In this document: piece after piece, positions 11,186 to 58,200 of the stretch
How positions within the stretch are numbered: the stretch's first letter is position 1
How the letters are laid out: each line of letters opens with the position of its first letter
Assembly (NCBI RefSeq): GCF_048593235.1
Contig: NC_133618.1
Coordinates: 471,579,294-471,643,293 of the forward strand
Length of the DNA stretch: 64,000 nt
Reading direction: 5' to 3'
Origin: Sminthopsis crassicaudata
Lineage: Eukaryota
Notes under the pieces: generated by a model
What the model saw: only the letters and a program-made list of their open reading frames with translations
Told to the model about the DNA's origin: nothing
The model's database searches: none
Translations under genes and position numbers: made by a program

Positions 11186-12224
11186 CTTGTCCCCAAAAGC
11201 ATTCATTTCTAGGTAGTAACTCTGATTCCCCACATTATACTGGTGATTGTGCTCCTTAATCAACTTCAAGTTCTGCTCCCATATTTTTCTCCTAAAAGGA
11301 TCCTCTTCCTATGAGAAAATTGAGAACCAAAGAGGTAATGGTAATAGAGAGATGGCCATGAGTTCTCTGCCTTAGAGTTGCAAGTTTACTGTCATATTTC
11401 CATGACTTTCAAAGCATGGGTATTTACCACTGGGAACATAAATTGTCTCTTCAACAACAAGTTAAAATTTAGTCACTTTCCATTTCCTTCCCTTTCCTGC
11501 AATATACAATTCTGTGATGTGGAATTAGCTACCTTAAATGAGGAAGTACCTCAGGGGTTGATTTAATCCAATCCATACCTAAATAGTCTTCTCTAAAATC
11601 TTTTTTTACCTCTGGATGGTACTCGATCGATCCATTTAATACATTCAAGCCACTTTGCAATAACATCCATTGCTAGGTAATTTCTCCTTATTATGATCTC
11701 AGATCTATTCATTCCAAGCAGTTTTCTAAAGTTTACATTGTAGAAAAAAGTAACTAAGCTGAATAAACTTTATTGCCTTCCTATAAGTGCATGTACTAGA
11801 AGTCACCCATGGTAGTTATAACTGTAATTCTTTTGACTTTCAGTTTCCAAGTAACTTCAACTAAACAGCATTTGTTAGTGTTTCAATTTTCTCATCTTTG
11901 TTGTAGCCATCTCATGGCCAAATTTCCTTTTTGTCCAGGTGATTTCTCCTATTGGTTGCCAAAAAACTGAACTCAGTGCTGCAAAGAGAGGTCTCAGTAG
12001 GGTAGAGTTCAGAGGAACTATCCCCTCCCTTGGATCTTTGAGGTATGCACATTTCCATGTATTACATACAGATTCTCACAAAATAGATGAACACTTACCT
12101 TAGTATAATTCCTCCCATAGGTGGACTTAAACAGTTCCCATTCTGTGTCCAGCTTTGTGTTTCTTGTTGGAAGACAATATGAAAGTCCCAAGAAAAGGGA
12201 AACAAGACAAAAGAATAGTCTCAT
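11186..12224 (-). pseudogene. Orphan 5' fragment of the cathepsin gene (exons 1-2: signal peptide plus most of the I29 prodomain)
   Basis: Exons 12224-12099 and 11308-11186 match the complete copies with intact splice sites. Homology stops at 10355 and I found no exon 3-7 motifs in 1-10354. Confidence 0.85.
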
Positions 12225-16314: not shown

Positions 16315-16946
16315 GAGAAGAAAAAGATGTATGAGTGGACAGAACAGAAGGCCTCAAGATTCTGGTCTATGCTTGAGAATCAGTCAAAAACTGGGTTCAT
16401 TCTCAAATGACACAGAAGGGGCAGACTCTCAAGGTACAAGAGCTGGGCATACACTGGCATGGGATGAGAATGGAGAAGCCTTCCCATGCCTATGGATTGT
16501 TGTTAGCAACACGTAAGTAGCATGGGCCCTGAGAAGTGCTGTGGGCCATTGCTTTGGGTCTCCTATGTAGACTGTTGTGGTGGGGGAGATGCTCTGAATT
16601 GTGCACCCTGGGCTTTAGTTCATTAACATATCCATATCACCTCAACAACAACTTTGGGTGTCTGGAGCTCATGGGAGGCTCAGAAACCATCCACAATTCT
16701 CAGGCTCCAAAGCTTAGACTCAGTCTAACTGTCTTCTCTGGGTTTAGTTCATGTCTCAGGGGCTGTTTTTAGACAATTATGAGACAGTTAGTTAGTATAT
16801 TTTATCATGTTCTTTTGATATATGGGGCAGCCTATCATGACTTCCAGGTTCCCCTTTGCAATCTTACTTCCTGCTTTTGTGTACTGCCCCCTTATAAATT
16901 AATTATTCTAACTAGAAGTGTGAGGAGAATGTTCAAAGGGACTGAA

Positions 16947-17261
16947 ACAAAATACAATTTTTTTTTTTTATGGCTGGATGGCAGTTTATTAAAAAGAGAT
17001 CTTGCACTTGGAGTTGTTCAACATTCATCATTCATGTGAAATCACAGACAATCAGCTTATTAAATCTTGTTAGAAGATGAGCCTTGAACTCAGGAAGACA
17101 CATGTTACCTGTTTAACTCTGGGCAAGTGACTAAAACTCTCAGTAGCTCTAAATTTCTTTTTTTTTTTTTTTATTAATAGTTTTTATTTACCAGATATAT
17201 GCATGGGTAATTTTACAACATTGACAAATGCCAAACCTTTTGGTCTACAAAATACAATTTT
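16947..17261 (-). mobile_element. L1-mediated 3' transduction (also 28999-29314, 41269-41586, 53323-53639)
   Basis: Minus strand order: ~70 bp L1 3' end, poly-A, ~188 bp non-L1 DNA, AATAAA, second poly-A; 15 bp TSD acaaaatacaatttt; TT/AAAA target site. Confidence 0.8.
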
Positions 17262-18516
17262 AATGTAGCTGTGATCTAACTGGAATCCTTTTTAATGCTG
17301 GGGCAGGAGTTTTGCCATTTCTTTCTTAACCTTATCATATATTGGATGCATTATCTTTCTTTTTTTCCTGGACTTGAGAATTCAGGAAAGTGTGAAGCAC
17401 CTGGTGAGGAACTCCCTCTACTAATTGAGTGATATCTCAGTCACTTAGGTAGAGAGAGTAGTCTGAGGCAGGTGACTTGCCCTGTGGGCCTAGAAGTCCA
17501 CACAAACACATTTGCCAGGAGGAAGCCTTGATTCAAAGTTGCCCAGAGGAAACTTCTGTCAGTTGCAACATGCTGCTTCCTATAGGACAATGGCTGTTAA
17601 TCATGATATTTCCCAAGAGCACTAATTGTGGTAAAACTGATAGGAGGAAACATTCCAACTTAATTTTATGTAGGATGCTCATTATTTTAGTCAGTTTTTA
17701 GTGTGGATCCAGTTGGAGTGGTATTTCAAGAGAAATGTAAGATCTTTATAGCTCAAGAGTACATGCCTACCTCTCTAAATTGGACTTTTCTCATTTAGCT
17801 ATTTAGTACAGAGGCAGAGATGACATTTGTTTATAAACCTAGTGGAAACTTACTGAAATGACATCAGAGTTGTAGCACTACTTTTCTTTTTAAACCAATT
17901 AAAGCTTTTCTTTTTAAACCAATTATCTGTCTGTCACCAAGCACATACTAGATGCTAAATAAATATCAAATGATCTGTGTGGACTCATGATTATTATAAG
18001 AAAGGATTAAAAATATTATGCAGACTTTACTATTACTTAATTTGCTATAGTGATGAGAGAAACAGATTCTTGTAATGTGGTAAATGTCATTTGTGTGAGA
18101 GAGACTGAGGTGCAAATCAGTGGCAAAAGAAATATTGTCTTCTTGGAGGAGACTAGGAAGCAGGGACCTGAAAGAAAGTGGCTGGTTGACATATAGAGGA
18201 TAGCTGGTACTTGCATGTGGGTAATACCCAATTATGGAATACGAATCTTCCTTTCTTCAAACAAAGTTGTATTGGAGTACTGTTAATCAGTTCAGATCCC
18301 AGTAATGCTAATCTTCTGGCTTCCATTTAGTAACACTGAGAATGTTGTGGTCATCTCTTGGCTAAGATACTCTAATAAACAATGAAGCTCAGTATATCTA
18401 TACTGCTTTCTCATTCAGAAAAATTTTCAGGATTTTCATATGCTGGATATCAAGCCTTCTAGCTGGAACTCAGGGAAAAAAGAAAACCCCCATTGCTGTT
18501 AAAATAATATGTTGTA

Positions 18517-18682
18517 GGGACAGCTGAGTCGTATAGTAGTTGATGCACTGGCTCTGGAGTGAAAAGGACCTGAGTTCAAATGTAGCCTTAGACACTTAAT
18601 ACTTCCTAGTTGTGTGACCCTGGGCTACTCACTTAACCCCAATCACCTCACCCCAAAAATAGAACAAAAAAATAAAAAATAA
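18517..18682 (+). mobile_element. WSINE1-type SINE abutting the 3' end of the cathepsin gene (each full unit)
   Basis: tRNA-like head, gagttcaaat B-box, CORE, A-rich tail. Confidence 0.85.
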
Positions 18683-18691
18683 AATATTTGC

Positions 18692-18697
18692 TTTATT
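18692..18697 (-). terminator. AATAAA polyadenylation signal, copy A (also 30745-30750, 43017-43022, 55070-55075)
   Basis: tttatt on + strand ~200 nt beyond the stop codon, followed on the minus strand by a U-rich tract. Confidence 0.6.
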
Positions 18698-18900
18698 ACA
18701 CAGAATGCTAGCATAGCTCATATCTGGATCCACATTGGTAGCAAACCAAGAAGAAGCAGGTGTGAAAGTCTTTTGTTAGGCTGACAAAACTTGGTCTCAG
18801 ATCTTGGAGTCTTATCTCACTGCTGCTGACTGCTAACAGAAGAGGATTTCTTCTTCTATGGGCCCAGAACACAGATCCAGGGAACGATCTCTCCATCCGC

Positions 18901-21900
18901 TTACAGAAGAGGATAGACGGAATCAGAAGCAATACCACAGTGGTTGTTCCCGGTCCTTGCAATACGCATGTAGCCATTTTCACCCCAGGCCTCACCAAAG
19001 CTGAAAGCAAAGAGAACTGAATTATTACCTGGGCAGCTATTAAGAGAATCCACCTTGCAAATGAAAGTGTATGTTTTGTACTTTGTCTTCATTTCTGAGA
19101 GTATAATGACAGTGAGCCTAAGGCATCCACAGAAAAAACAGGATTTGGATATCCTGAGCCACATGGCTATTGGAATATTGGCTCAATCCCCAAATGCAAC
19201 TGAGGTAGGTGAAAGAGGAATTTGTTGTCAAGGCTCAGAAGGAATCAATGCCAGATTGTGAAACACAGCAAGTGGTAAAAAGCCGGCTCTGTTAAAGAGC
19301 TAAGACACTCTGCTTTTCATGGACCAAGTGGAGAAAACAAATCCCAGTGGATGTCCAGGTTCTTAAATCTAGGTAAACTCCACTGAATACAAGAGTCCTC
19401 AAAGCTCTTCCCTCCTTCACAAGGCAGTTCTACAGCTTTGTCATGTTCCTCCTTCCATACCTATTTTTAATAATCCAATATTTCCTGCCTCCAAATTGGC
19501 CTTGGCCATTTAACTTATCTAAAATACAATAGTTTTCTTCTGATTGAATAAACTTATTAATGGATTCTTCTTCTCCATATCCAACCAACACGACAGCATG
19601 GTTCAAATAATTCGGGTCACAACGTGGTTCAGTGAAGAGTCCTAGAGAAGGAAAGAAAAGAGCACTTTGGGTGAGTTTGGTGGCTTATTGGAAAGGGGAC
19701 AGGGCTTGTGTTAGGAGGTCCTAAGTGCAAAGAGATCCTTCCTAGCTGTGAGATGTTGGTCAAGTCACTTGTTTCTGTTTGCCTAAGTTCCCTCTTTTTA
19801 ATATGGGAATGATACTAGTATTCATCTTCCTGAGATTTTGGAAGAATGAAATGGAAGATAATTCTTATAGAGAGCACTTAGCATAGCCCCTGAGATCCAT
19901 TCAACCTTGTATTATTTATTTAGCTCAATCTTCCACAGTTGAGCCTTTTCTTTTTGGACACCATATCTGACTGACACCAAGTCTGTCTGATGGCTCACCT
20001 CCTCGATAGAAACGGAAGGAGTATGTGGCATGCATCGCCACGGACAATGGCCCCACGGTTGCCACAGCTTCCATCAGGGCTTTTTCATCTCCAGGGGGGA
20101 GCTTTTTATAACCTCTCATTGTAAGATGTGGACATCTAGATGTGGAGTAGCACCACTCATTTTTCTGAAAGAGATAATCACATGGAGGAAGTCAGCAAAG
20201 GTTGGGGATGAACAGATGAACATCATTTCCAGGAATCTGAGGAAAGCTCAAGTATCTAATGACATTTTTACAGAGAGATGGACCCAGCTGGGCTTTCTTT
20301 CTTTCTTTTTTTTTTTTTTAATTTTTATTTTATTTTATAATTATAACATTTTTTTGACAGTACATATGCATGGGTAATTTTTTACAACATTATCCCTTAC
20401 ACTTACTTCTATTCAGATTTTTTCCCTTCCTTCCCCAACCCCCTCCCCCAGATGGCAAGCAGTCTTATATATGTTAAATATATTACAGTATATGGGCTTG
20501 CTTTCTTAACCAGCAGGTTTGTGTCTCGATAGGGGGCCCTGGAAGATGTGGCATCCAACCCTTGGTGTGCAAAGGGTAAAAGCGTAAAGGTTGCCATTCT
20601 TTCAGAGTGGTGAGGACTTCCACCACATGCTGAGCCCTCCCATAATACAGAGGAGGAGAAGAGATCTCAAACCCCACTTTTATTCACACTAGAAGCTTGC
20701 CAAGTCAGCAGACAGCATGGAAGCCTAAGGGTTTCTGGCTGTTGTACCCTTGGGGAAAAGGCATTTTAAGGCAATCCATATATTAGAGGGACTTCCAAAT
20801 GCCTGGTTTGTTCACTGCAAACTTGCATGCATTTTATGAAAAAGAAAGGCATAGTCACTGTCTTAGTCAAATTTTCTGCTGGTTTCTCTGATGGTTGTTG
20901 CCATTGTTGCCGTTAGGTGCTACATGAACATGCTTAAATTATAGAAAATGTCCCTTCCTTCAGTGCAGCTCCCTTGCTCATTGGGACATCAGCTCTCCGA
21001 GGTCATGGTCCTCTTGGACATGGAAGGACAAACAAGCTCATCCCTTCCACAAACCTTTTCTTGGTTTCAGGAGCAAGTGGTTTCCCTTGGCCTTATGCCC
21101 AAGGAGCCAGCTGGATTTGCCTTTACCCAGCCTTGACCAGAGGGGCCAGCCCCGTGTCCAGGACAGAAGGTTTCCTCATGTACCTGGTTCTGGTATGGGT
21201 AGCAGAACTCAGTGGTAAGGCCTCCCTGTTCTATGAGGTAATCGTAGGCCGCGGTGACGAATCCCCCAACACAGCTACTTCCTGCTGTACAGTCTACTAG
21301 CTGCTGTTTGCTCAGTTGCACATTTTTGCCTGTTGTGCGGAAGAGCTGGCCTTCCAGAGCTCCAGCTGCTGAGAAGGCCCAGCAGGAGCCACAGGTACCC
21401 TGAAAGAAGAGATAGCATTCACTGAGCCTTGTGCTTAAGCTCCTGAGGGGCTCAGTGAGTGCAAGCCTCTGACCATGACAGGAGAGGTCTCCATTGGTTG
21501 CTAGACAAAAGAATCAGGGAGAAGCACTTAACATTCTGGTAAGAGTTCTGGTTTTCTGTCCCCTGAGAAGGACTTTGGGACTTCTGCTCCATGGCTCATC
21601 ACTTAGTGGGAAGGAGACATGGCCAGGATCGGGGCCCGTGCCAAGTCCCTTGAAGTCTCCCTATTTTCTGGCCCAGTTTCTTGCAGGTTTAAAGGTGGCA
21701 GCTCTGAATGGAAATATGCTCAATAAAGCAGAGTTCAAGAAGAAACCCTGGAAGGGGGGAAATACCTGTTGTACCACGGGTGTTAAAAAGCCACGCTTCC
21801 TCCAGTCTACTGATCTGGGAATGTCACCTAAAGGTGAGTTACAGTGGGTTTTGCCATTTTTTCCTGTCCTCGGTGTCATGGGCCGGCTCATCATGAGGTT

Positions 21901-24286
21901 GAATTCCTCATCAGTCTGAAAGAATGAAACAATTGCACAGAATGGGTGTCCTTTTTTCAGAGAAAGATAATTGGGGGGATGACCCATCTCCCCTGAACCC
22001 CCTGGCCAATACTGGCTGCATCTTCCCTCATTCTTCCCAACTCATTGGCTGGGGCACAGGAGTTGGAATACTTTTGACGCCCCAGTTTTTTTCTCTATTT
22101 TTCTTCCCATGTTATGGGCCAGCACTCTGAAACAAGGATTCTTAGAAGATGTTAAGGCAGTGGAATTGATGAGTCAATGGTTGTCTAGTTTAGCATGGTG
22201 ATTAATAGTTCTCCAAGTTCAGCATGATTGATTTAATCTTATAACAAATAATGGTTTCTTAGTGATATAATAATTGGTTTATACTCAGTGCAGAGAATAT
22301 AAGCTGAGCCAAACTTAGCCAAAGGAGGCAGAGACAGATTCGTTCCATTATTCAAGTTTGTATTGGCTGGAGGCTGAAGCACAAAAACTTGGGAGTCAGA
22401 CTCACTTCATCTCACATCACCTTAGTAGCCTATATTCCTGCATTTCCTCCACTGGGACCAAGCTAGCATGGCCCCAGGCAAAGAGACAATAAAGATTTTG
22501 GACTTTAAAACCTGGCTATTCTTTTGGTAAATACCAAAATACTCTACTGAAAAGAAGGCTGCTTGAAGACCTCCAAGACATGGGAAAGAGAACACTACAT
22601 TCTTCCTCCATTGGGGAACTTCTCTTCCTTTGAGGCTGCTGCTATTCACAGCTACCATCCACTGAAAATGCTGGTAATTTTTTTATGTACAAACTATACC
22701 TCTAAATCATTCTGCTTCATTCTGTGATCAGTTTGATACCTGGCTTACAGTTTGACTCCCCTCTACAACTGCTGCCCCAACTAAGGGACTTCTATGTCCT
22801 TATGGAGGTTTCCTCCAGTTCCTTAATCACTCACTTCCTCCACCTCCTCCCCTTTTATGAGGTGCTCCTCCATTGATATCAGTCTCACACTAAGATGATC
22901 ATATCCTCAGTTTTGCCATCTCCCACCCCTGAGCCCTTTTATGTTTCAGAATTCTTAAAACCAATTATACAACCATCATCCAAAGTCTTCTGTCCTGTCC
23001 TTCTGGGTTCTCTTACATAACCCTATTCTTCATCCTTAGCATGACCTCCAATCCTTTAACACCTCAGTTCTCTTCCAGGTTACCTTCTCTGGGGGCCTTC
23101 CCCATTACAGTGGAAGTTTTTGAAGGCAGGGCCTATCTTATTGTCTCTTTGTTACCCTAGGTAATTTAGTGAGCTAAAAGCACACTGCCTGGCACATAAT
23201 AGATGCGTGATAAAAATGTATTGAATTAATGAATTTATCACACTTACCTTGTCCCCAAAAGCATTCATTTCTAGGTAGTAACTCTGATTCCCCACATTAT
23301 ACTGGTGATTGTGCTCCTTAATCAACTTCAAGTTCTGCTCCCATATTTTTCTCCTAAAAGGATCCTCTTCCTATGAGAAAATTGAGAACCAAAGAGGTAA
23401 TGGTAATAGAGAGATGGCCATGAGTTCTCTGCCTTAGAGTTGCAAGTTTACTGTCATATTTCCATGACTTTCAAAGCATGGGTATTTACCACTGGGAACA
23501 TAAATTGTCTCTTCAACAACAAGTTAAAATTTAGTCACTTTCCATTTCCTTCCCTTTCCTGCAATATACAATTCTGTGATGTGGAATTAGCTACCTTAAA
23601 TGAGGAAGTACCTCAGGGGTTGATTTAATCCAATCCATACCTAAATAGTCTTCTCTAAAATCTTTTTTTACCTCTGGATGGTACTCGATCGATCCATTTA
23701 ATACATTCAAGCCACTTTGCAATAACATCCATTGCTAGGTAATTTCTCCTTATTATGATCTCAGATCTATTCATTCCAAGCAGTTTTCTAAAGTTTACAT
23801 TGTAGAAAAAAGTAACTAAGCTGAATAAACTTTATTGCCTTCCTATAAGTGCATGTACTAGAAGTCACCCATGGTAGTTATAACTGTAATTCTTTTGACT
23901 TTCAGTTTCCAAGTAACTTCAACTAAACAGCATTTGTTAGTGTTTCAATTTTCTCATCTTTGTTGTAGCCATCTCATGGCCAAATTTCCTTTTTGTCCAG
24001 GTGATTTCTCCTATTGGTTGCCAAAAAACTGAACTCAGTGCTGCAAAGAGAGGTCTCAGTAGGGTAGAGTTCAGAGGAACTATCCCCTCCCTTGGATCTT
24101 TGAGGTATGCACATTTCCATGTATTACATACAGATTCTCACAAAATAGATGAACACTTACCTTAGTATAATTCCTCCCATAGGTGGACTTAAACAGTTCC
24201 CATTCTGTGTCCAGCTTTGTGTTTCTTGTTGGAAGACAATATGAAAGTCCCAAGAAAAGGGAAACAAGACAAAAGAATAGTCTCAT
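18901..24286 (-). CDS. Cathepsin L/S/K-like papain-family (C1A) preproprotease, copy A, 353 aa, 7 coding exons
   Basis: Exons 24286-24161, 23370-23248, 21915-21766, 21399-21184, 20164-19999, 19641-19461, 19000-18901; all GT-AG, 1062 nt, open frame. Signal peptide [17 protein letters not shown]; ERFNIN-type [21 protein letters not shown]; MNAFGD; mature start IPRSVDWR; [11 protein letters not shown]; [11 protein letters not shown]; YWIIKNSFG; NHCGIA. Confidence 0.95.
19725..19890 (+). mobile_element. MIR fragment in intron 5
   Basis: ggtcaagtcactt...gcctaagttccctc...aatatgggaatgata...gagagcacttagcata. Confidence 0.6.
20304..20492 (-). mobile_element. Short L1 3' tail in intron 4, same orientation as the gene
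   Basis: Shares gacagtacatatgcatgggtaatt with the larger L1; TSD tgggcttKctttctt at 20289-20303 and 20493-20507 (1 mismatch). Confidence 0.85.
22128..22416. mobile_element. LTR-like element at the unit junction in intron 2 (also 34181-34469, 46453-46741, 58506-58794)
   Basis: tgaaac...ctcaca, 289 bp, internal tataag; no TSD found; its right end is exactly the unit boundary. Confidence 0.45.
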
Positions 24287-30953: not shown

Positions 30954-33900
30954 TTACAGAAGAGGATAGACGGAATCAGAAGCAATACCACAGTGGTTGT
31001 TCCCGGTCCTTGCAATACGCATGTAGCCATTTTCACCCCAGGCCTCACCAAAGCTGAAAGCAAAGAGAACTGAATTATTACCTGGGCAGCTATTAAGAGA
31101 ATCCACCTTGCAAATGAAAGTGTATGTTTTGTACTTTGTCTTCATTTCTGAGAGTATAATGACAGTGAGCCTAAGGCATCCACAGAAAAAACAGGATTTG
31201 GATATCCTGAGCCACATGGCTATTGGAATATTGGCTCAATCCCCAAATGCAACTGAGGTAGGTGAAAGAGGAATTTGTTGTCAAGGCTCAGAAGGAATCA
31301 ATGCCAGATTGTGAAACACAGCAAGTGGTAAAAAGCCGGCTCTGTTAAAGAGCTAAGACACTCTGCTTTTCATGGACCAAGTGGAGAAAACAAATCCCAG
31401 TGGATGTCCAGGTTCTTAAATCTAGGTAAACTCCACTGAATACAAGAGTCCTCAAAGCTCTTCCCTCCTTCACAAGGCAGTTCTACAGCTTTGTCATGTT
31501 CCTCCTTCCATACCTATTTTTAATAATCCAATATTTCCTGCCTCCAAATTGGCCTTGGCCATTTAACTTATCTAAAATACAATAGTTTTCTTCTGATTGA
31601 ATAAACTTATTAATGGATTCTTCTTCTCCATATCCAACCAACACGACAGCATGGTTCAAATAATTCGGGTCACAACGTGGTTCAGTGAAGAGTCCTAGAG
31701 AAGGAAAGAAAAGAGCACTTTGGGTGAGTTTGGTGGCTTATTGGAAAGGGGACAGGGCTTGTGTTAGGAGGTCCTAAGTGCAAAGAGATCCTTCCTAGCT
31801 GTGAGATGTTGGTCAAGTCACTTGTTTCTGTTTGCCTAAGTTCCCTCTTTTTAATATGGGAATGATACTAGTATTCATCTTCCTGAGATTTTGGAAGAAT
31901 GAAATGGAAGATAATTCTTATAGAGAGCACTTAGCATAGCCCCTGAGATCCATTCAACCTTGTATTATTTATTTAGCTCAATCTTCCACAGTTGAGCCTT
32001 TTCTTTTTGGACACCATATCTGACTGACACCAAGTCTGTCTGATGGCTCACCTCCTCGATAGAAACGGAAGGAGTATGTGGCATGCATCGCCACGGACAA
32101 TGGCCCCACGGTTGCCACAGCTTCCATCAGGGCTTTTTCATCTCCAGGGGGGAGCTTTTTATAACCTCTCATTGTAAGATGTGGACATCTAGATGTGGAG
32201 TAGCACCACTCATTTTTCTGAAAGAGATAATCACATGGAGGAAGTCAGCAAAGGTTGGGGATGAACAGATGAACATCATTTCCAGGAATCTGAGGAAAGC
32301 TCAAGTATCTAATGACATTTTTACAGAGAGATGGACCCAGCTGGGCTTTCTTTCTTTCTTTTTTTTTTTTTTAATTTTTATTTTATTTTATAATTATAAC
32401 ATTTTTTTGACAGTACATATGCATGGGTAATTTTTTACAACATTATCCCTTACACTTACTTCTATTCAGATTTTTTCCCTTCCTTCCCCAACCCCCTCCC
32501 CCAGATGGCAAGCAGTCTTATATATGTTAAATATATTACAGTATATGGGCTTGCTTTCTTAACCAGCAGGTTTGTGTCTCGATAGGGGGCCCTGGAAGAT
32601 GTGGCATCCAACCCTTGGTGTGCAAAGGGTAAAAGCGTAAAGGTTGCCATTCTTTCAGAGTGGTGAGGACTTCCACCACATGCTGAGCCCTCCCATAATA
32701 CAGAGGAGGAGAAGAGATCTCAAACCCCACTTTTATTCACACTAGAAGCTTGCCAAGTCAGCAGACAGCATGGAAGCCTAAGGGTTTCTGGCTGTTGTAC
32801 CCTTGGGGAAAAGGCATTTTAAGGCAATCCATATATTAGAGGGACTTCCAAATGCCTGGTTTGTTCACTGCAAACTTGCATGCATTTTATGAAAAAGAAA
32901 GGCATAGTCACTGTCTTAGTCAAATTTTCTGCTGGTTTCTCTGATGGTTGTTGCCATTGTTGCCGTTAGGTGCTACATGAACATGCTTAAATTATAGAAA
33001 ATGTCCCTTCCTTCAGTGCAGCTCCCTTGCTCATTGGGACATCAGCTCTCCGAGGTCATGGTCCTCTTGGACATGGAAGGACAAACAAGCTCATCCCTTC
33101 CACAAACCTTTTCTTGGTTTCAGGAGCAAGTGGTTTCCCTTGGCCTTATGCCCAAGGAGCCAGCTGGATTTGCCTTTACCCAGCCTTGACCAGAGGGGCC
33201 AGCCCCGTGTCCAGGACAGAAGGTTTCCTCATGTACCTGGTTCTGGTATGGGTAGCAGAACTCAGTGGTAAGGCCTCCCTGTTCTATGAGGTAATCGTAG
33301 GCCGCGGTGACGAATCCCCCAACACAGCTACTTCCTGCTGTACAGTCTACTAGCTGCTGTTTGCTCAGTTGCACATTTTTGCCTGTTGTGCGGAAGAGCT
33401 GGCCTTCCAGAGCTCCAGCTGCTGAGAAGGCCCAGCAGGAGCCACAGGTACCCTGAAAGAAGAGATAGCATTCACTGAGCCTTGTGCTTAAGCTCCTGAG
33501 GGGCTCAGTGAGTGCAAGCCTCTGACCATGACAGGAGAGGTCTCCATTGGTTGCTAGACAAAAGAATCAGGGAGAAGCACTTAACATTCTGGTAAGAGTT
33601 CTGGTTTTCTGTCCCCTGAGAAGGACTTTGGGACTTCTGCTCCATGGCTCATCACTTAGTGGGAAGGAGACATGGCCAGGATCGGGGCCCGTGCCAAGTC
33701 CCTTGAAGTCTCCCTATTTTCTGGCCCAGTTTCTTGCAGGTTTAAAGGTGGCAGCTCTGAATGGAAATATGCTCAATAAAGCAGAGTTCAAGAAGAAACC
33801 CTGGAAGGGGGGAAATACCTGTTGTACCACGGGTGTTAAAAAGCCACGCTTCCTCCAGTCTACTGATCTGGGAATGTCACCTAAAGGTGAGTTACAGTGG

Positions 33901-43225: not shown

Positions 43226-46200
43226 TTACAGAAGAGGATAGACGGAATCAGAAGCAATACCACAGTGGTTGTTCCCGGTCCTTGCAATACGCATGTAGCC
43301 ATTTTCACCCCAGGCCTCACCAAAGCTGAAAGCAAAGAGAACTGAATTATTACCTGGGCAGCTATTAAGAGAATCCACCTTGCAAATGAAAGTGTATGTT
43401 TTGTACTTTGTCTTCATTTCTGAGAGTATAATGACAGTGAGCCTAAGGCATCCACAGAAAAAACAGGATTTGGATATCCTGAGCCACATGGCTATTGGAA
43501 TATTGGCTCAATCCCCAAATGCAACTGAGGTAGGTGAAAGAGGAATTTGTTGTCAAGGCTCAGAAGGAATCAATGCCAGATTGTGAAACACAGCAAGTGG
43601 TAAAAAGCCGGCTCTGTTAAAGAGCTAAGACACTCTGCTTTTCATGGACCAAGTGGAGAAAACAAATCCCAGTGGATGTCCAGGTTCTTAAATCTAGGTA
43701 AACTCCACTGAATACAAGAGTCCTCAAAGCTCTTCCCTCCTTCACAAGGCAGTTCTACAGCTTTGTCATGTTCCTCCTTCCATACCTATTTTTAATAATC
43801 CAATATTTCCTGCCTCCAAATTGGCCTTGGCCATTTAACTTATCTAAAATACAATAGTTTTCTTCTGATTGAATAAACTTATTAATGGATTCTTCTTCTC
43901 CATATCCAACCAACACGACAGCATGGTTCAAATAATTCGGGTCACAACGTGGTTCAGTGAAGAGTCCTAGAGAAGGAAAGAAAAGAGCACTTTGGGTGAG
44001 TTTGGTGGCTTATTGGAAAGGGGACAGGGCTTGTGTTAGGAGGTCCTAAGTGCAAAGAGATCCTTCCTAGCTGTGAGATGTTGGTCAAGTCACTTGTTTC
44101 TGTTTGCCTAAGTTCCCTCTTTTTAATATGGGAATGATACTAGTATTCATCTTCCTGAGATTTTGGAAGAATGAAATGGAAGATAATTCTTATAGAGAGC
44201 ACTTAGCATAGCCCCTGAGATCCATTCAACCTTGTATTATTTATTTAGCTCAATCTTCCACAGTTGAGCCTTTTCTTTTTGGACACCATATCTGACTGAC
44301 ACCAAGTCTGTCTGATGGCTCACCTCCTCGATAGAAACGGAAGGAGTATGTGGCATGCATCGCCACGGACAATGGCCCCACGGTTGCCACAGCTTCCATC
44401 AGGGCTTTTTCATCTCCAGGGGGGAGCTTTTTATAACCTCTCATTGTAAGATGTGGACATCTAGATGTGGAGTAGCACCACTCATTTTTCTGAAAGAGAT
44501 AATCACATGGAGGAAGTCAGCAAAGGTTGGGGATGAACAGATGAACATCATTTCCAGGAATCTGAGGAAAGCTCAAGTATCTAATGACATTTTTACAGAG
44601 AGATGGACCCAGCTGGGCTTTCTTTCTTTCTTTTTTTTTTTTTTAATTTTTATTTTATTTTATAATTATAACATTTTTTTGACAGTACATATGCATGGGT
44701 AATTTTTTACAACATTATCCCTTACACTTACTTCTATTCAGATTTTTTCCCTTCCTTCCCCAACCCCCTCCCCCAGATGGCAAGCAGTCTTATATATGTT
44801 AAATATATTACAGTATATGGGCTTGCTTTCTTAACCAGCAGGTTTGTGTCTCGATAGGGGGCCCTGGAAGATGTGGCATCCAACCCTTGGTGTGCAAAGG
44901 GTAAAAGCGTAAAGGTTGCCATTCTTTCAGAGTGGTGAGGACTTCCACCACATGCTGAGCCCTCCCATAATACAGAGGAGGAGAAGAGATCTCAAACCCC
45001 ACTTTTATTCACACTAGAAGCTTGCCAAGTCAGCAGACAGCATGGAAGCCTAAGGGTTTCTGGCTGTTGTACCCTTGGGGAAAAGGCATTTTAAGGCAAT
45101 CCATATATTAGAGGGACTTCCAAATGCCTGGTTTGTTCACTGCAAACTTGCATGCATTTTATGAAAAAGAAAGGCATAGTCACTGTCTTAGTCAAATTTT
45201 CTGCTGGTTTCTCTGATGGTTGTTGCCATTGTTGCCGTTAGGTGCTACATGAACATGCTTAAATTATAGAAAATGTCCCTTCCTTCAGTGCAGCTCCCTT
45301 GCTCATTGGGACATCAGCTCTCCGAGGTCATGGTCCTCTTGGACATGGAAGGACAAACAAGCTCATCCCTTCCACAAACCTTTTCTTGGTTTCAGGAGCA
45401 AGTGGTTTCCCTTGGCCTTATGCCCAAGGAGCCAGCTGGATTTGCCTTTACCCAGCCTTGACCAGAGGGGCCAGCCCCGTGTCCAGGACAGAAGGTTTCC
45501 TCATGTACCTGGTTCTGGTATGGGTAGCAGAACTCAGTGGTAAGGCCTCCCTGTTCTATGAGGTAATCGTAGGCCGCGGTGACGAATCCCCCAACACAGC
45601 TACTTCCTGCTGTACAGTCTACTAGCTGCTGTTTGCTCAGTTGCACATTTTTGCCTGTTGTGCGGAAGAGCTGGCCTTCCAGAGCTCCAGCTGCTGAGAA
45701 GGCCCAGCAGGAGCCACAGGTACCCTGAAAGAAGAGATAGCATTCACTGAGCCTTGTGCTTAAGCTCCTGAGGGGCTCAGTGAGTGCAAGCCTCTGACCA
45801 TGACAGGAGAGGTCTCCATTGGTTGCTAGACAAAAGAATCAGGGAGAAGCACTTAACATTCTGGTAAGAGTTCTGGTTTTCTGTCCCCTGAGAAGGACTT
45901 TGGGACTTCTGCTCCATGGCTCATCACTTAGTGGGAAGGAGACATGGCCAGGATCGGGGCCCGTGCCAAGTCCCTTGAAGTCTCCCTATTTTCTGGCCCA
46001 GTTTCTTGCAGGTTTAAAGGTGGCAGCTCTGAATGGAAATATGCTCAATAAAGCAGAGTTCAAGAAGAAACCCTGGAAGGGGGGAAATACCTGTTGTACC
46101 ACGGGTGTTAAAAAGCCACGCTTCCTCCAGTCTACTGATCTGGGAATGTCACCTAAAGGTGAGTTACAGTGGGTTTTGCCATTTTTTCCTGTCCTCGGTG

Positions 46201-55278: not shown

Positions 55279-58200
55279 TTACAGAAGAGGATAGACGGAA
55301 TCAGAAGCAATACCACAGTGGTTGTTCCCGGTCCTTGCAATACGCATGTAGCCATTTTCACCCCAGGCCTCACCAAAGCTGAAAGCAAAGAGAACTGAAT
55401 TATTACCTGGGCAGCTATTAAGAGAATCCACCTTGCAAATGAAAGTGTATGTTTTGTACTTTGTCTTCATTTCTGAGAGTATAATGACAGTGAGCCTAAG
55501 GCATCCACAGAAAAAACAGGATTTGGATATCCTGAGCCACATGGCTATTGGAATATTGGCTCAATCCCCAAATGCAACTGAGGTAGGTGAAAGAGGAATT
55601 TGTTGTCAAGGCTCAGAAGGAATCAATGCCAGATTGTGAAACACAGCAAGTGGTAAAAAGCCGGCTCTGTTAAAGAGCTAAGACACTCTGCTTTTCATGG
55701 ACCAAGTGGAGAAAACAAATCCCAGTGGATGTCCAGGTTCTTAAATCTAGGTAAACTCCACTGAATACAAGAGTCCTCAAAGCTCTTCCCTCCTTCACAA
55801 GGCAGTTCTACAGCTTTGTCATGTTCCTCCTTCCATACCTATTTTTAATAATCCAATATTTCCTGCCTCCAAATTGGCCTTGGCCATTTAACTTATCTAA
55901 AATACAATAGTTTTCTTCTGATTGAATAAACTTATTAATGGATTCTTCTTCTCCATATCCAACCAACACGACAGCATGGTTCAAATAATTCGGGTCACAA
56001 CGTGGTTCAGTGAAGAGTCCTAGAGAAGGAAAGAAAAGAGCACTTTGGGTGAGTTTGGTGGCTTATTGGAAAGGGGACAGGGCTTGTGTTAGGAGGTCCT
56101 AAGTGCAAAGAGATCCTTCCTAGCTGTGAGATGTTGGTCAAGTCACTTGTTTCTGTTTGCCTAAGTTCCCTCTTTTTAATATGGGAATGATACTAGTATT
56201 CATCTTCCTGAGATTTTGGAAGAATGAAATGGAAGATAATTCTTATAGAGAGCACTTAGCATAGCCCCTGAGATCCATTCAACCTTGTATTATTTATTTA
56301 GCTCAATCTTCCACAGTTGAGCCTTTTCTTTTTGGACACCATATCTGACTGACACCAAGTCTGTCTGATGGCTCACCTCCTCGATAGAAACGGAAGGAGT
56401 ATGTGGCATGCATCGCCACGGACAATGGCCCCACGGTTGCCACAGCTTCCATCAGGGCTTTTTCATCTCCAGGGGGGAGCTTTTTATAACCTCTCATTGT
56501 AAGATGTGGACATCTAGATGTGGAGTAGCACCACTCATTTTTCTGAAAGAGATAATCACATGGAGGAAGTCAGCAAAGGTTGGGGATGAACAGATGAACA
56601 TCATTTCCAGGAATCTGAGGAAAGCTCAAGTATCTAATGACATTTTTACAGAGAGATGGACCCAGCTGGGCTTTCTTTCTTTCTTTTTTTTTTTTTTAAT
56701 TTTTATTTTATTTTATAATTATAACATTTTTTTGACAGTACATATGCATGGGTAATTTTTTACAACATTATCCCTTACACTTACTTCTATTCAGATTTTT
56801 TCCCTTCCTTCCCCAACCCCCTCCCCCAGATGGCAAGCAGTCTTATATATGTTAAATATATTACAGTATATGGGCTTGCTTTCTTAACCAGCAGGTTTGT
56901 GTCTCGATAGGGGGCCCTGGAAGATGTGGCATCCAACCCTTGGTGTGCAAAGGGTAAAAGCGTAAAGGTTGCCATTCTTTCAGAGTGGTGAGGACTTCCA
57001 CCACATGCTGAGCCCTCCCATAATACAGAGGAGGAGAAGAGATCTCAAACCCCACTTTTATTCACACTAGAAGCTTGCCAAGTCAGCAGACAGCATGGAA
57101 GCCTAAGGGTTTCTGGCTGTTGTACCCTTGGGGAAAAGGCATTTTAAGGCAATCCATATATTAGAGGGACTTCCAAATGCCTGGTTTGTTCACTGCAAAC
57201 TTGCATGCATTTTATGAAAAAGAAAGGCATAGTCACTGTCTTAGTCAAATTTTCTGCTGGTTTCTCTGATGGTTGTTGCCATTGTTGCCGTTAGGTGCTA
57301 CATGAACATGCTTAAATTATAGAAAATGTCCCTTCCTTCAGTGCAGCTCCCTTGCTCATTGGGACATCAGCTCTCCGAGGTCATGGTCCTCTTGGACATG
57401 GAAGGACAAACAAGCTCATCCCTTCCACAAACCTTTTCTTGGTTTCAGGAGCAAGTGGTTTCCCTTGGCCTTATGCCCAAGGAGCCAGCTGGATTTGCCT
57501 TTACCCAGCCTTGACCAGAGGGGCCAGCCCCGTGTCCAGGACAGAAGGTTTCCTCATGTACCTGGTTCTGGTATGGGTAGCAGAACTCAGTGGTAAGGCC
57601 TCCCTGTTCTATGAGGTAATCGTAGGCCGCGGTGACGAATCCCCCAACACAGCTACTTCCTGCTGTACAGTCTACTAGCTGCTGTTTGCTCAGTTGCACA
57701 TTTTTGCCTGTTGTGCGGAAGAGCTGGCCTTCCAGAGCTCCAGCTGCTGAGAAGGCCCAGCAGGAGCCACAGGTACCCTGAAAGAAGAGATAGCATTCAC
57801 TGAGCCTTGTGCTTAAGCTCCTGAGGGGCTCAGTGAGTGCAAGCCTCTGACCATGACAGGAGAGGTCTCCATTGGTTGCTAGACAAAAGAATCAGGGAGA
57901 AGCACTTAACATTCTGGTAAGAGTTCTGGTTTTCTGTCCCCTGAGAAGGACTTTGGGACTTCTGCTCCATGGCTCATCACTTAGTGGGAAGGAGACATGG
58001 CCAGGATCGGGGCCCGTGCCAAGTCCCTTGAAGTCTCCCTATTTTCTGGCCCAGTTTCTTGCAGGTTTAAAGGTGGCAGCTCTGAATGGAAATATGCTCA
58101 ATAAAGCAGAGTTCAAGAAGAAACCCTGGAAGGGGGGAAATACCTGTTGTACCACGGGTGTTAAAAAGCCACGCTTCCTCCAGTCTACTGATCTGGGAAT

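Follow-up and report, generated by a model that had tools for sequence, protein, structure and literature searches.

In cathepsin L, the loop between the strands that carry the catalytic histidine and asparagine is nicked, which gives a heavy and a light chain. Cathepsin W, a mammalian protease of the C1A (papain) family, has a long insertion between the same two residues. In falcipain-2 and falcipain-3, the insert between His and Asn is a 14-residue hairpin arm that binds haemoglobin (PMC3317066). Inserts at this site are already known in other C1A enzymes. Here we describe a further one, in a cathepsin L-like gene of Sminthopsis crassicaudata. The gene lies in a stretch of 64,000 nucleotides (nt) that we call the window (RefSeq assembly GCF_048593235.1, contig NC_133618.1, positions 471,579,294 to 471,643,293 of the forward strand); coordinates below are positions in the window. 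Its sixth coding exon encodes a 31-residue loop between His and Asn. Comparison with other genomes shows that the long loop is not specific to this locus: it characterises a lineage of marsupial genes that are annotated by automatic means and are unstudied. We think it rather probable, by analogy with cathepsin L, that the loop is an expanded, flexible and acidic form of the heavy/light-chain processing loop.

These are the parts of exon 6 in the first full copy of the gene:

19461..19641, minus strand: coding exon 6 of the cathepsin L-like gene, copy 1 (181 nt; from its splice sites, a match to PF00112 with E=1.4e-5, and a spliced RNA contig from run X9)
19481..19573, minus strand: 31-codon loop between GYG and YW (from the translation of exon 6)
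19598..19600, minus strand: codon for the catalytic His (NHAV; from the translation and the Pfam alignment)
19463..19465, minus strand: codon for the catalytic Asn (IIKN/S, where the slash is the exon border; from the translation)
19526..19528, minus strand: codon for the loop's sole Cys, which is not conserved (Tyr in Antechinus, Asn in gene A of Dromiciops)

The acceptor of exon 6 (...ttctctAG at 19643-19642) is pyrimidine-rich (ttccttctctAG), and the donor is GTatgg at 19460-19459. The exon is free of stops when read from 19639 (59 residues), and the remaining frames have 3 and 8 stops. In the alignment to Pfam's Peptidase_C1 profile (PF00112), residues 2-59 of the exon (58 residues) match only 33 profile positions (156-188). 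That is, the exon holds about 25 residues beyond the profile. The first-pass annotation of this DNA, which was made from the letters alone, had described just such an in-frame insertion between the catalytic His and Asn, and the profile alignment bears it out, in what is otherwise an intact C1A protease. Against cathepsins L and V the excess is 21 residues (31 in the loop versus 10 in human cathepsin V), and the size of 118 nt that the annotation gave for this exon in CTSL agrees with this. The loop has a lower G+C content (GC) than the part of the exon that is upstream (left) of it (0.31 versus 0.46). The encoded residues are acidic and rich in Asn and Gln, with a mean hydropathy of -1.08 and a net charge of -2. 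The annotation had also suggested that the loop, with its sole Cys, could be a dimerisation handle; a conserved disulfide or handle of this kind is unlikely, given the Tyr and Asn at this position in the relatives.

To see which parts of the exon are in RNA, contigs from four runs, from four studies, were aligned to 18400-20200. A 242-nt contig from run X9 covers 20082-19998 and 19640-19484 with zero mismatches. It skips 357 nt that read CT..AC on the plus strand, or GT..AG on the strand of the gene, and the joint is at 19999/19641, which confirms the junction of exons 5 and 6. The contig continues without gaps through the loop to Arg52, and only the last codon of the loop (Lys53, 19483-19481) is past its end. 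A second X9 contig begins at the acceptor of exon 7 with six foreign letters, as a junction would give. The loop is kept in the spliced transcript, and the X9 contig shows no splicing-out of the insert. The annotation had asked for RNA evidence for the full 181-nt exon; this was obtained for the junction with exon 5 and for the loop up to Arg52, and not for the donor end. The loop carries acceptor-like (TTGTATTTTAG) and donor-like (ATAAGT) strings, and exon 6 contains two in-frame GT..AG segments (69 nt, 19553-19485, and 39 nt, 19527-19489). We rejected both of these as mini-introns, as the spliced X9 contig retains them.

The gene has seven coding exons on the minus strand, which together encode about 353 amino acids (by the sum of the exons). 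The database searches were run exon by exon or with database proteins. Besides exon 6, the exons are:

24161..24286, minus strand: coding exon 1, signal peptide (hydrophobic N-terminus)
23248..23370, minus strand: coding exon 2, I29 propeptide of the ERWNIN type (PF08246, E=2.4e-10)
21766..21915, minus strand: coding exon 3, end of the propeptide and start of the mature enzyme, DIPRSVDWR (from the translation; ends in ..VVQQ)
21184..21399, minus strand: coding exon 4, with the catalytic Cys (PF00112, E=3.1e-21)
19999..20164, minus strand: coding exon 5 (KNEWCYST...FRFYRG; RNA shows its donor spliced to exon 6)
18901..19000, minus strand: coding exon 7, with the stop codon TAA at 18903-18901 (an X9 contig begins at its acceptor)

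The gene has the catalytic residues (Gln, Cys, His and Asn), an I29 propeptide and the usual disulfide cysteines. As in other C1A proteases, the catalytic Cys is in a CGSCWAFS context and is preceded by the oxyanion Gln (in the VVQQ that ends exon 3), the His and Asn strands (NHAV..VGYG and WI.KNS) are both within exon 6, and there is a signal peptide and an I29 propeptide (exons 1 and 2). The spacing of the propeptide motif in exon 2 is that of the cathepsin L-like (ERW/FNIN) subfamily. In PDB, cathepsin V is the best match, and L, K and S come next; the nearest to exons 4 and 5 are cathepsins V and L, with K and S close behind. The L-type propeptide and these exon matches do not fit the cathepsin W/F subgroup (CTSW itself was not compared directly as a sequence). 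Overall, this is an intact and transcribed cathepsin L-like gene.

We compared the exon 6 peptide to 1.84 billion representative proteins and found six matches, of which one was strong: XP_051829712.1 from Antechinus flavipes, annotated as "cathepsin L2-like". Its loop (EEESNNNFMELEENYYILDKLNDQDQLGGRK) has 31 residues, just as in the window. The Antechinus locus aligns with the window gene throughout, including the introns, at 85-91% identity, and its seven exons are open. The Antechinus gene is the orthologue. Another relative is gene A of Dromiciops, whose exons 5-7 are open and whose 33-residue loop aligns over its full length to the window's loop at the DNA level, with one 6-nt indel. To find further marsupial genes, we searched by words, starting from the conserved propeptide or a bilby relative, and we compared the koala and Dromiciops loci as DNA. 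The lengths of the loop, counted between GYG and (Y/F)W, are:

31 residues: window gene
31 residues: Antechinus, family A
33 residues: Dromiciops gene A, family A
15 residues: koala, family B
19 residues: bilby, family B
21 residues: sugar glider, family B
21 residues: Dromiciops gene B, family B
22 residues: Sarcophilus and Antechinus, family B
21 residues: Monodelphis and Gracilinanus (unrelated sequence)
9 residues: one Gracilinanus gene
10 residues: echidna cathepsin L-like gene
10 residues: human cathepsin V
8-9 residues: canonical marsupial cathepsin L

The sequence of the loop is unrelated between the opossum genes and the Australian genes. We built a maximum-likelihood tree (quick mode) from the C-terminal 135 residues, without cathepsins K and S as outgroups and with the Antechinus orthologue standing in for the window gene. 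In it, all of the long-loop marsupial genes fall into one clade (95 by the Shimodaira-Hasegawa-like approximate likelihood ratio test) that is apart from the canonical marsupial CTSL, with the echidna gene as its neighbour. This short tree speaks to membership in the clade and not to its deep placement. The window gene is not a CTSL or CTSV orthologue: it does not group with canonical CTSL, and its loop is longer than 8-10 residues. Rather, it belongs to a fast-evolving and marsupial-only clade of cathepsin L paralogues whose loops range from 9 to 33 residues. In family A (the dasyurids and Dromiciops gene A), the loop would have reached 31-33 residues before the split of Microbiotheria and Dasyuromorphia. 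Family B is the sister of family A and has loops of 15-22 residues, and those of the opossum genes have 9-21.

Cathepsins K, S, L and V, which are well studied, lack the insert, and the long-loop relatives are known as predictions only. We do not agree with the annotation that the loop is new, since the same 31-residue loop is found in Antechinus, a 33-residue loop is found in Dromiciops gene A, and expanded loops are found across the clade. Literature searches for expansions of cathepsin L in marsupials, within the library that we used, turned up nothing specific to the long-loop family. A paper on the opossum uterus reports that a "CTSL1-like" gene, which might belong to the long-loop clade, is highly expressed.

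Several database models of these genes seem to be wrong. Dromiciops has two paralogues from this clade, about 55 kb apart (locus L003, 10001-17145 and 64832-71904). In NCBI's model P0011, exons 1-4 seem to come from the first paralogue and the later ones from the second, after which the reading goes out of frame; as P0011 appears to be chimeric, the protein database contains neither of the true Dromiciops products. In Sarcophilus, models P0002 and P0007 have loops of 18 and 10 residues (13 or 21 residues are dropped). The gap in P0002 coincides exactly with the GT..AG segment of 39 nt, and the middle of the protein is mistranslated in both models, so these short loops are probably modelling artefacts and less probably a real, shorter allele. 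The Antechinus and Sarcophilus proteins are 90% identical over 93 columns, and the window gene is further from both than they are from one another. Taken by itself, this would suggest that the window comes from a dasyuromorph outside that pair.

The Asn-Ser-Trp motif that begins with the catalytic Asn is Asn-Ser-Phe (codon 18998-19000, minus strand) in the window gene and in the family A genes of Antechinus and Sarcophilus. The Trp (Trp177) is kept in Dromiciops gene A and in all of the family B genes, so the change is specific to dasyurids.

To ask how the loop evolves, we compared the gene to its Antechinus orthologue, exon by exon, using Nei-Gojobori counts. The ratios of non-synonymous to synonymous change (dN/dS) are:

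0.55: whole gene
0.15-0.27: exons 1-2 (propeptide exons)
0.72-1.13: exons 4-6
about 1.8: loop (9 non-synonymous changes and 1 synonymous change; these counts are too small for a test)

When the DNA is compared to Dromiciops gene A, identity is 54.8% in the loop, versus 79% and 95% for the parts of the exon on either side and about 70-73% for introns 5 and 6 (by gapped global alignments). As the loop is less similar than the introns are, its sequence is not conserved and is drifting at least as fast as the introns. What persists across these genomes, while the sequence drifts, is the presence of the loop, its frame and its approximate length. The frame has to be retained anyway, as both the catalytic Asn and the last exon are downstream.

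The loops of the relatives share the units EEN and QYE(E/G)xK. In the window's loop there is a tandem hexamer, GGCCAA GGCCAA (Gly-Gln-Gly-Gln; 19492-19503, minus strand), which is GACCAA GACCAA in Antechinus. The same position reads GAAGAA AACCAA in Dromiciops and koala. The base that differs from Antechinus is the same in both hexamers, so slippage or homogenisation of the units seems likelier than two independent point changes. The pattern looks like turnover of short units by slippage, and the comparison across species points to a loop that grew step by step, with acidic units of the EEN type being turned over. We found no support for the annotation's idea that the insert arose by internal duplication (a repeated GAAGAA...ATAAGTT pattern), as the similarity within exon 6 is not above chance: in comparing one half of the insert to the other, 71 of 500 shuffles attained the observed alignment score, and in comparing the insert to the downstream sequence, 350 of 500 did. 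More broadly, local DNA alignments of the insert to its flanks, to exon 7 and to itself were no better than shuffles, so we rejected a duplication within exon 6. The alignment to falcipain had suggested that a segment of the loop resembles KYWIIKNSWG..WG, but this is not significant at the DNA level, and we rejected it as well.

The position of the loop is that of the heavy/light-chain cut in cathepsin L. The heavy chain in PDB entry 1icf_A has 175 residues, and we take the catalytic residues to be His 163 and Asn 187 in cathepsin L numbering (from alignment offsets and the cathepsin L sequence). From the length of 1icf_A and the arithmetic of the alignment, the heavy chain ends 4 residues after GYG, which is inside the loop. 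This agrees with the annotation, which had noted that cathepsin L is cut here.

We propose that the short acidic hairpin loop that joins the His strand to the Asn strand (in the R domain) was enlarged in a marsupial clade, and that it may have grown stepwise through slippage and turnover of GAA/AAC-rich (Glu/Asn) codons. The enlarged loop would be exposed to solvent and flexible, and it would be tolerated as the catalytic strands are fixed on both sides. It would also be tolerated because a disulfide of the Cys156-Cys209 type bridges it. The chain-bridging cysteines (EPRC ... NNHCGIA) are present in the window gene, and this disulfide, along with the sheet, could hold the halves together even if the loop were cut or excised. 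The loop's most likely biochemical role would then be as an accessible site for maturation or processing, giving a two-chain enzyme, with the loop possibly nicked or excised and its sequence under little constraint. In short, the loop is most likely a flexible linker or a cutting site and not a new catalytic feature.

Several observations weigh against an expanded processing loop. First, 9 of the 31 residues in the dasyurid loop are hydrophobic, including some in the conserved block ENY-ILDKLN, which is more than a purely disordered linker would need, so the loop could contain a small structured element. Second, two paralogue families have both kept a long loop over tens of millions of years, and this long retention may reflect selection for the loop. 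Third, the flexibility of the loop is our inference: AlphaFold gave low-confidence models for both of the proteins that we considered. (For the partial Antechinus protein, the mean predicted local distance difference test score, or pLDDT, was 53, with the loop under 50 and no hairpin; for the full-length bilby protein P0013, the mean pLDDT was 63. Both are poor models from shallow alignments.) Fourth, cleavage within the loop is a proposal by analogy with cathepsin L. Finally, the sense-strand RNA comes from contigs of one run (X9), and the last 23 nt of exon 6 (19461-19483, the donor end) are outside the spliced contig.

From about 10355 to its end, the window is a tandem array (10355-64000) in which units of 12,053 and 12,272 bp alternate. 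The units are 99.8-99.9% identical, as if a 24.3-kb block of two units had been duplicated, which would fit the alternating lengths. All of the coding exons, including the splice dinucleotides, are identical across the four full copies. The other copies of exon 6 (by comparison of the copies) are:

31514..31694, minus strand: exon 6 of tandem copy 2, identical
43786..43966, minus strand: exon 6 of tandem copy 3, identical
55839..56019, minus strand: exon 6 of tandem copy 4, identical

The annotation had pointed out that exon 6 is open in all four copies. It is indeed stop-free and identical in all four, but because the units are nearly identical, the four open copies amount to a single observation and are not independent evidence. 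In a fifth and partial unit at the edge of the array, the only exons present are identical copies of 1 and 2 (12099-12224 and 11186-11308, minus strand); these orphan exons encode the signal peptide and the I29 propeptide. A tblastn search of the Antechinus locus gave no second copy, either in the 10 kb downstream or in about 6.6 kb upstream of exon 1, though a neighbour at the window's spacing would begin only about 6.7 kb upstream. We saw the fourfold, nearly identical array in the window only.

There is also spliced RNA from the plus strand, antisense to the cathepsin gene, with GT-AG introns at 16513-18703 and 19671-21676. Between them is a 967-nt exon (18704-19670, plus strand) that spans exon 7, intron 6 and exon 6 of the cathepsin gene. 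One flanking exon ends at 16512 and the other starts at 21677, and the arrangement is repeated in each unit. A contig from run X6 (18700-19670) is the deepest on this stretch (depth 27.7), and its loose ends map to 16483-16508 and 21677-21706. As the junctions are canonical on the plus strand, this contig is not pre-mRNA of the cathepsin gene. Another contig from this run (record 15) joins 19998-20072 (minus strand) to 20053-20166 (plus strand), a switch of strand within exon 5 that is probably an assembly or library artefact. In the 3' flank of the gene, 18583-18643 is covered by many contigs from all four runs, at depths of hundreds to tens of thousands and with foreign sequence on both sides. 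This is probably a highly repeated interspersed element, similar to a short interspersed nuclear element. A further copy of it is in the Antechinus locus (L001, 3811-3913).

A different explanation for the loop is that it is a functional exosite, in the form of a protruding hairpin or arm that contacts a substrate, an inhibitor or a partner, and that its fast evolution is adaptive. The insertion point is shared with the falcipain arm (PMC3317066), and like that arm, the loop is an extra segment that separates the catalytic His and Asn in an enzyme of the papain family. Falcipain-2 is also the sole PDB family with a phmmer match across part of the insert (E=0.0024), but this match rests mainly on the flanking LNHAV.LVG.G motif. 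The falcipain arm is a fixed beta-hairpin of 14 residues in all members, while the loop has 31 residues here and 9-33 in the relatives, its sequence is unrelated between the opossum and Australian genes, and there is no phylogenetic relationship to the falcipains. No hairpin was confidently predicted, albeit from a poor Antechinus model. The retention of a long loop in two paralogue families would fit an exosite, and dN/dS near or above 1 in the catalytic exons (0.72-1.13 in exons 4-6), together with the recent fourfold amplification, would fit diversifying or dosage selection. The block ENY(C/Y)ILDKLN is common to the window and Antechinus, but a conserved block of 10 residues is expected by chance at about 10% divergence, and nothing recognisable is conserved in the middle of the loop when the window is compared to Dromiciops gene A. 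Of the rival explanations, we consider an exosite to be the most credible, but unlikely.

A broader version of this idea is that the loop is a fast-evolving interaction module of a marsupial-specific, recently amplified family of secreted or lysosomal proteases, with adaptive changes and with the antisense RNA regulating the gene. The family would then be comparable to the placental cathepsins of rodents, and the loop might retarget the enzyme to other substrates, or help it to escape inhibitors (endogenous or from pathogens), in a reproductive, lactation or immune setting. We think that this combination is quite doubtful.

Alternatively, the gene might be decaying or non-functional, or the segment might be removed from most mature mRNAs, so that the loop would have no meaning at the protein level. 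This would fit with dN/dS of about 1 in exons 4-6, with the Phe in place of Trp177, and with the poor gene models (the Antechinus model is partial, and the two Sarcophilus models lack 13 or 21 loop residues). Also, because the antisense spliced RNA over exon 6 is abundant, part of the RNA coverage is foreign to the gene. However, all seven exons are open and have canonical splice sites in both the window and Antechinus, exons 5-7 of Dromiciops gene A are open, and dN/dS is just 0.15-0.27 in the propeptide. The frame of the loop is intact, although about 45% of its bases have changed since this lineage and that of Dromiciops parted. The spliced X9 contig, which keeps both of the candidate mini-introns, speaks against skipping of the loop, and vertebrate introns are not usually as short as 39-69 nt. 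We consider a dead or loop-skipping gene to be very unlikely.

Finally, the loop is AT-rich (GC of 0.31) and has splice-like strings and in-frame GT..AG segments, but an exonised intron is barely credible and we rejected it, as genes of the cathepsin L/V/K/S type have no intron at this site, all of the relatives that we examined encode the region in one exon, and the graded series of loops (8-10, 15, 19-22 and 31-33 residues) with EEN and QYE units fits stepwise expansion of an acidic loop that was already there, and does not fit the capture of an intron.

The expanded processing loop would leave the established view of the protease mechanism unchanged. Its interest is that the His-Asn hairpin is among the few sites in papain-family enzymes that accept large inserts, and that in the cases that are understood, these alter how the enzyme works: the falcipain insert binds substrate, and the loop of cathepsin L governs two-chain maturation. 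A natural series of loops of 8-33 residues, within one young mammalian clade, is a test set for how activation, stability and specificity depend on the length of the loop. Our results also flag an undescribed family of marsupial cathepsins that automated gene models handle badly.

Among known systems, cathepsin W resembles the window gene in having a long insertion between His and Asn, but it belongs to the F/W subgroup and has an ERFNAQ-type propeptide, while the window gene has an L-type propeptide and L/V-like exons. The marsupial genes annotated as "cathepsin L2-like" or "procathepsin L-like" (in koala, bilby, sugar glider and opossum) form one expanded-loop clade with the window gene; these are predictions only, and several are truncated, chimeric, or have part of the loop modelled out. 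The true marsupial orthologue of CTSL is a separate gene with a loop of 8-9 residues. Human CTSL and CTSV differ from the window gene in having a 10-residue loop instead of 31 residues and NSW instead of NSF, and the window gene's catalytic domain is fast-evolving. They share with it the fold, the catalytic residues, the ERWNIN-type I29 propeptide, and the layout of seven coding exons, with exon borders at ..YRG/G.. and ..KN/S... Their loop is at the same position and has the same acidic, Asn-rich character.

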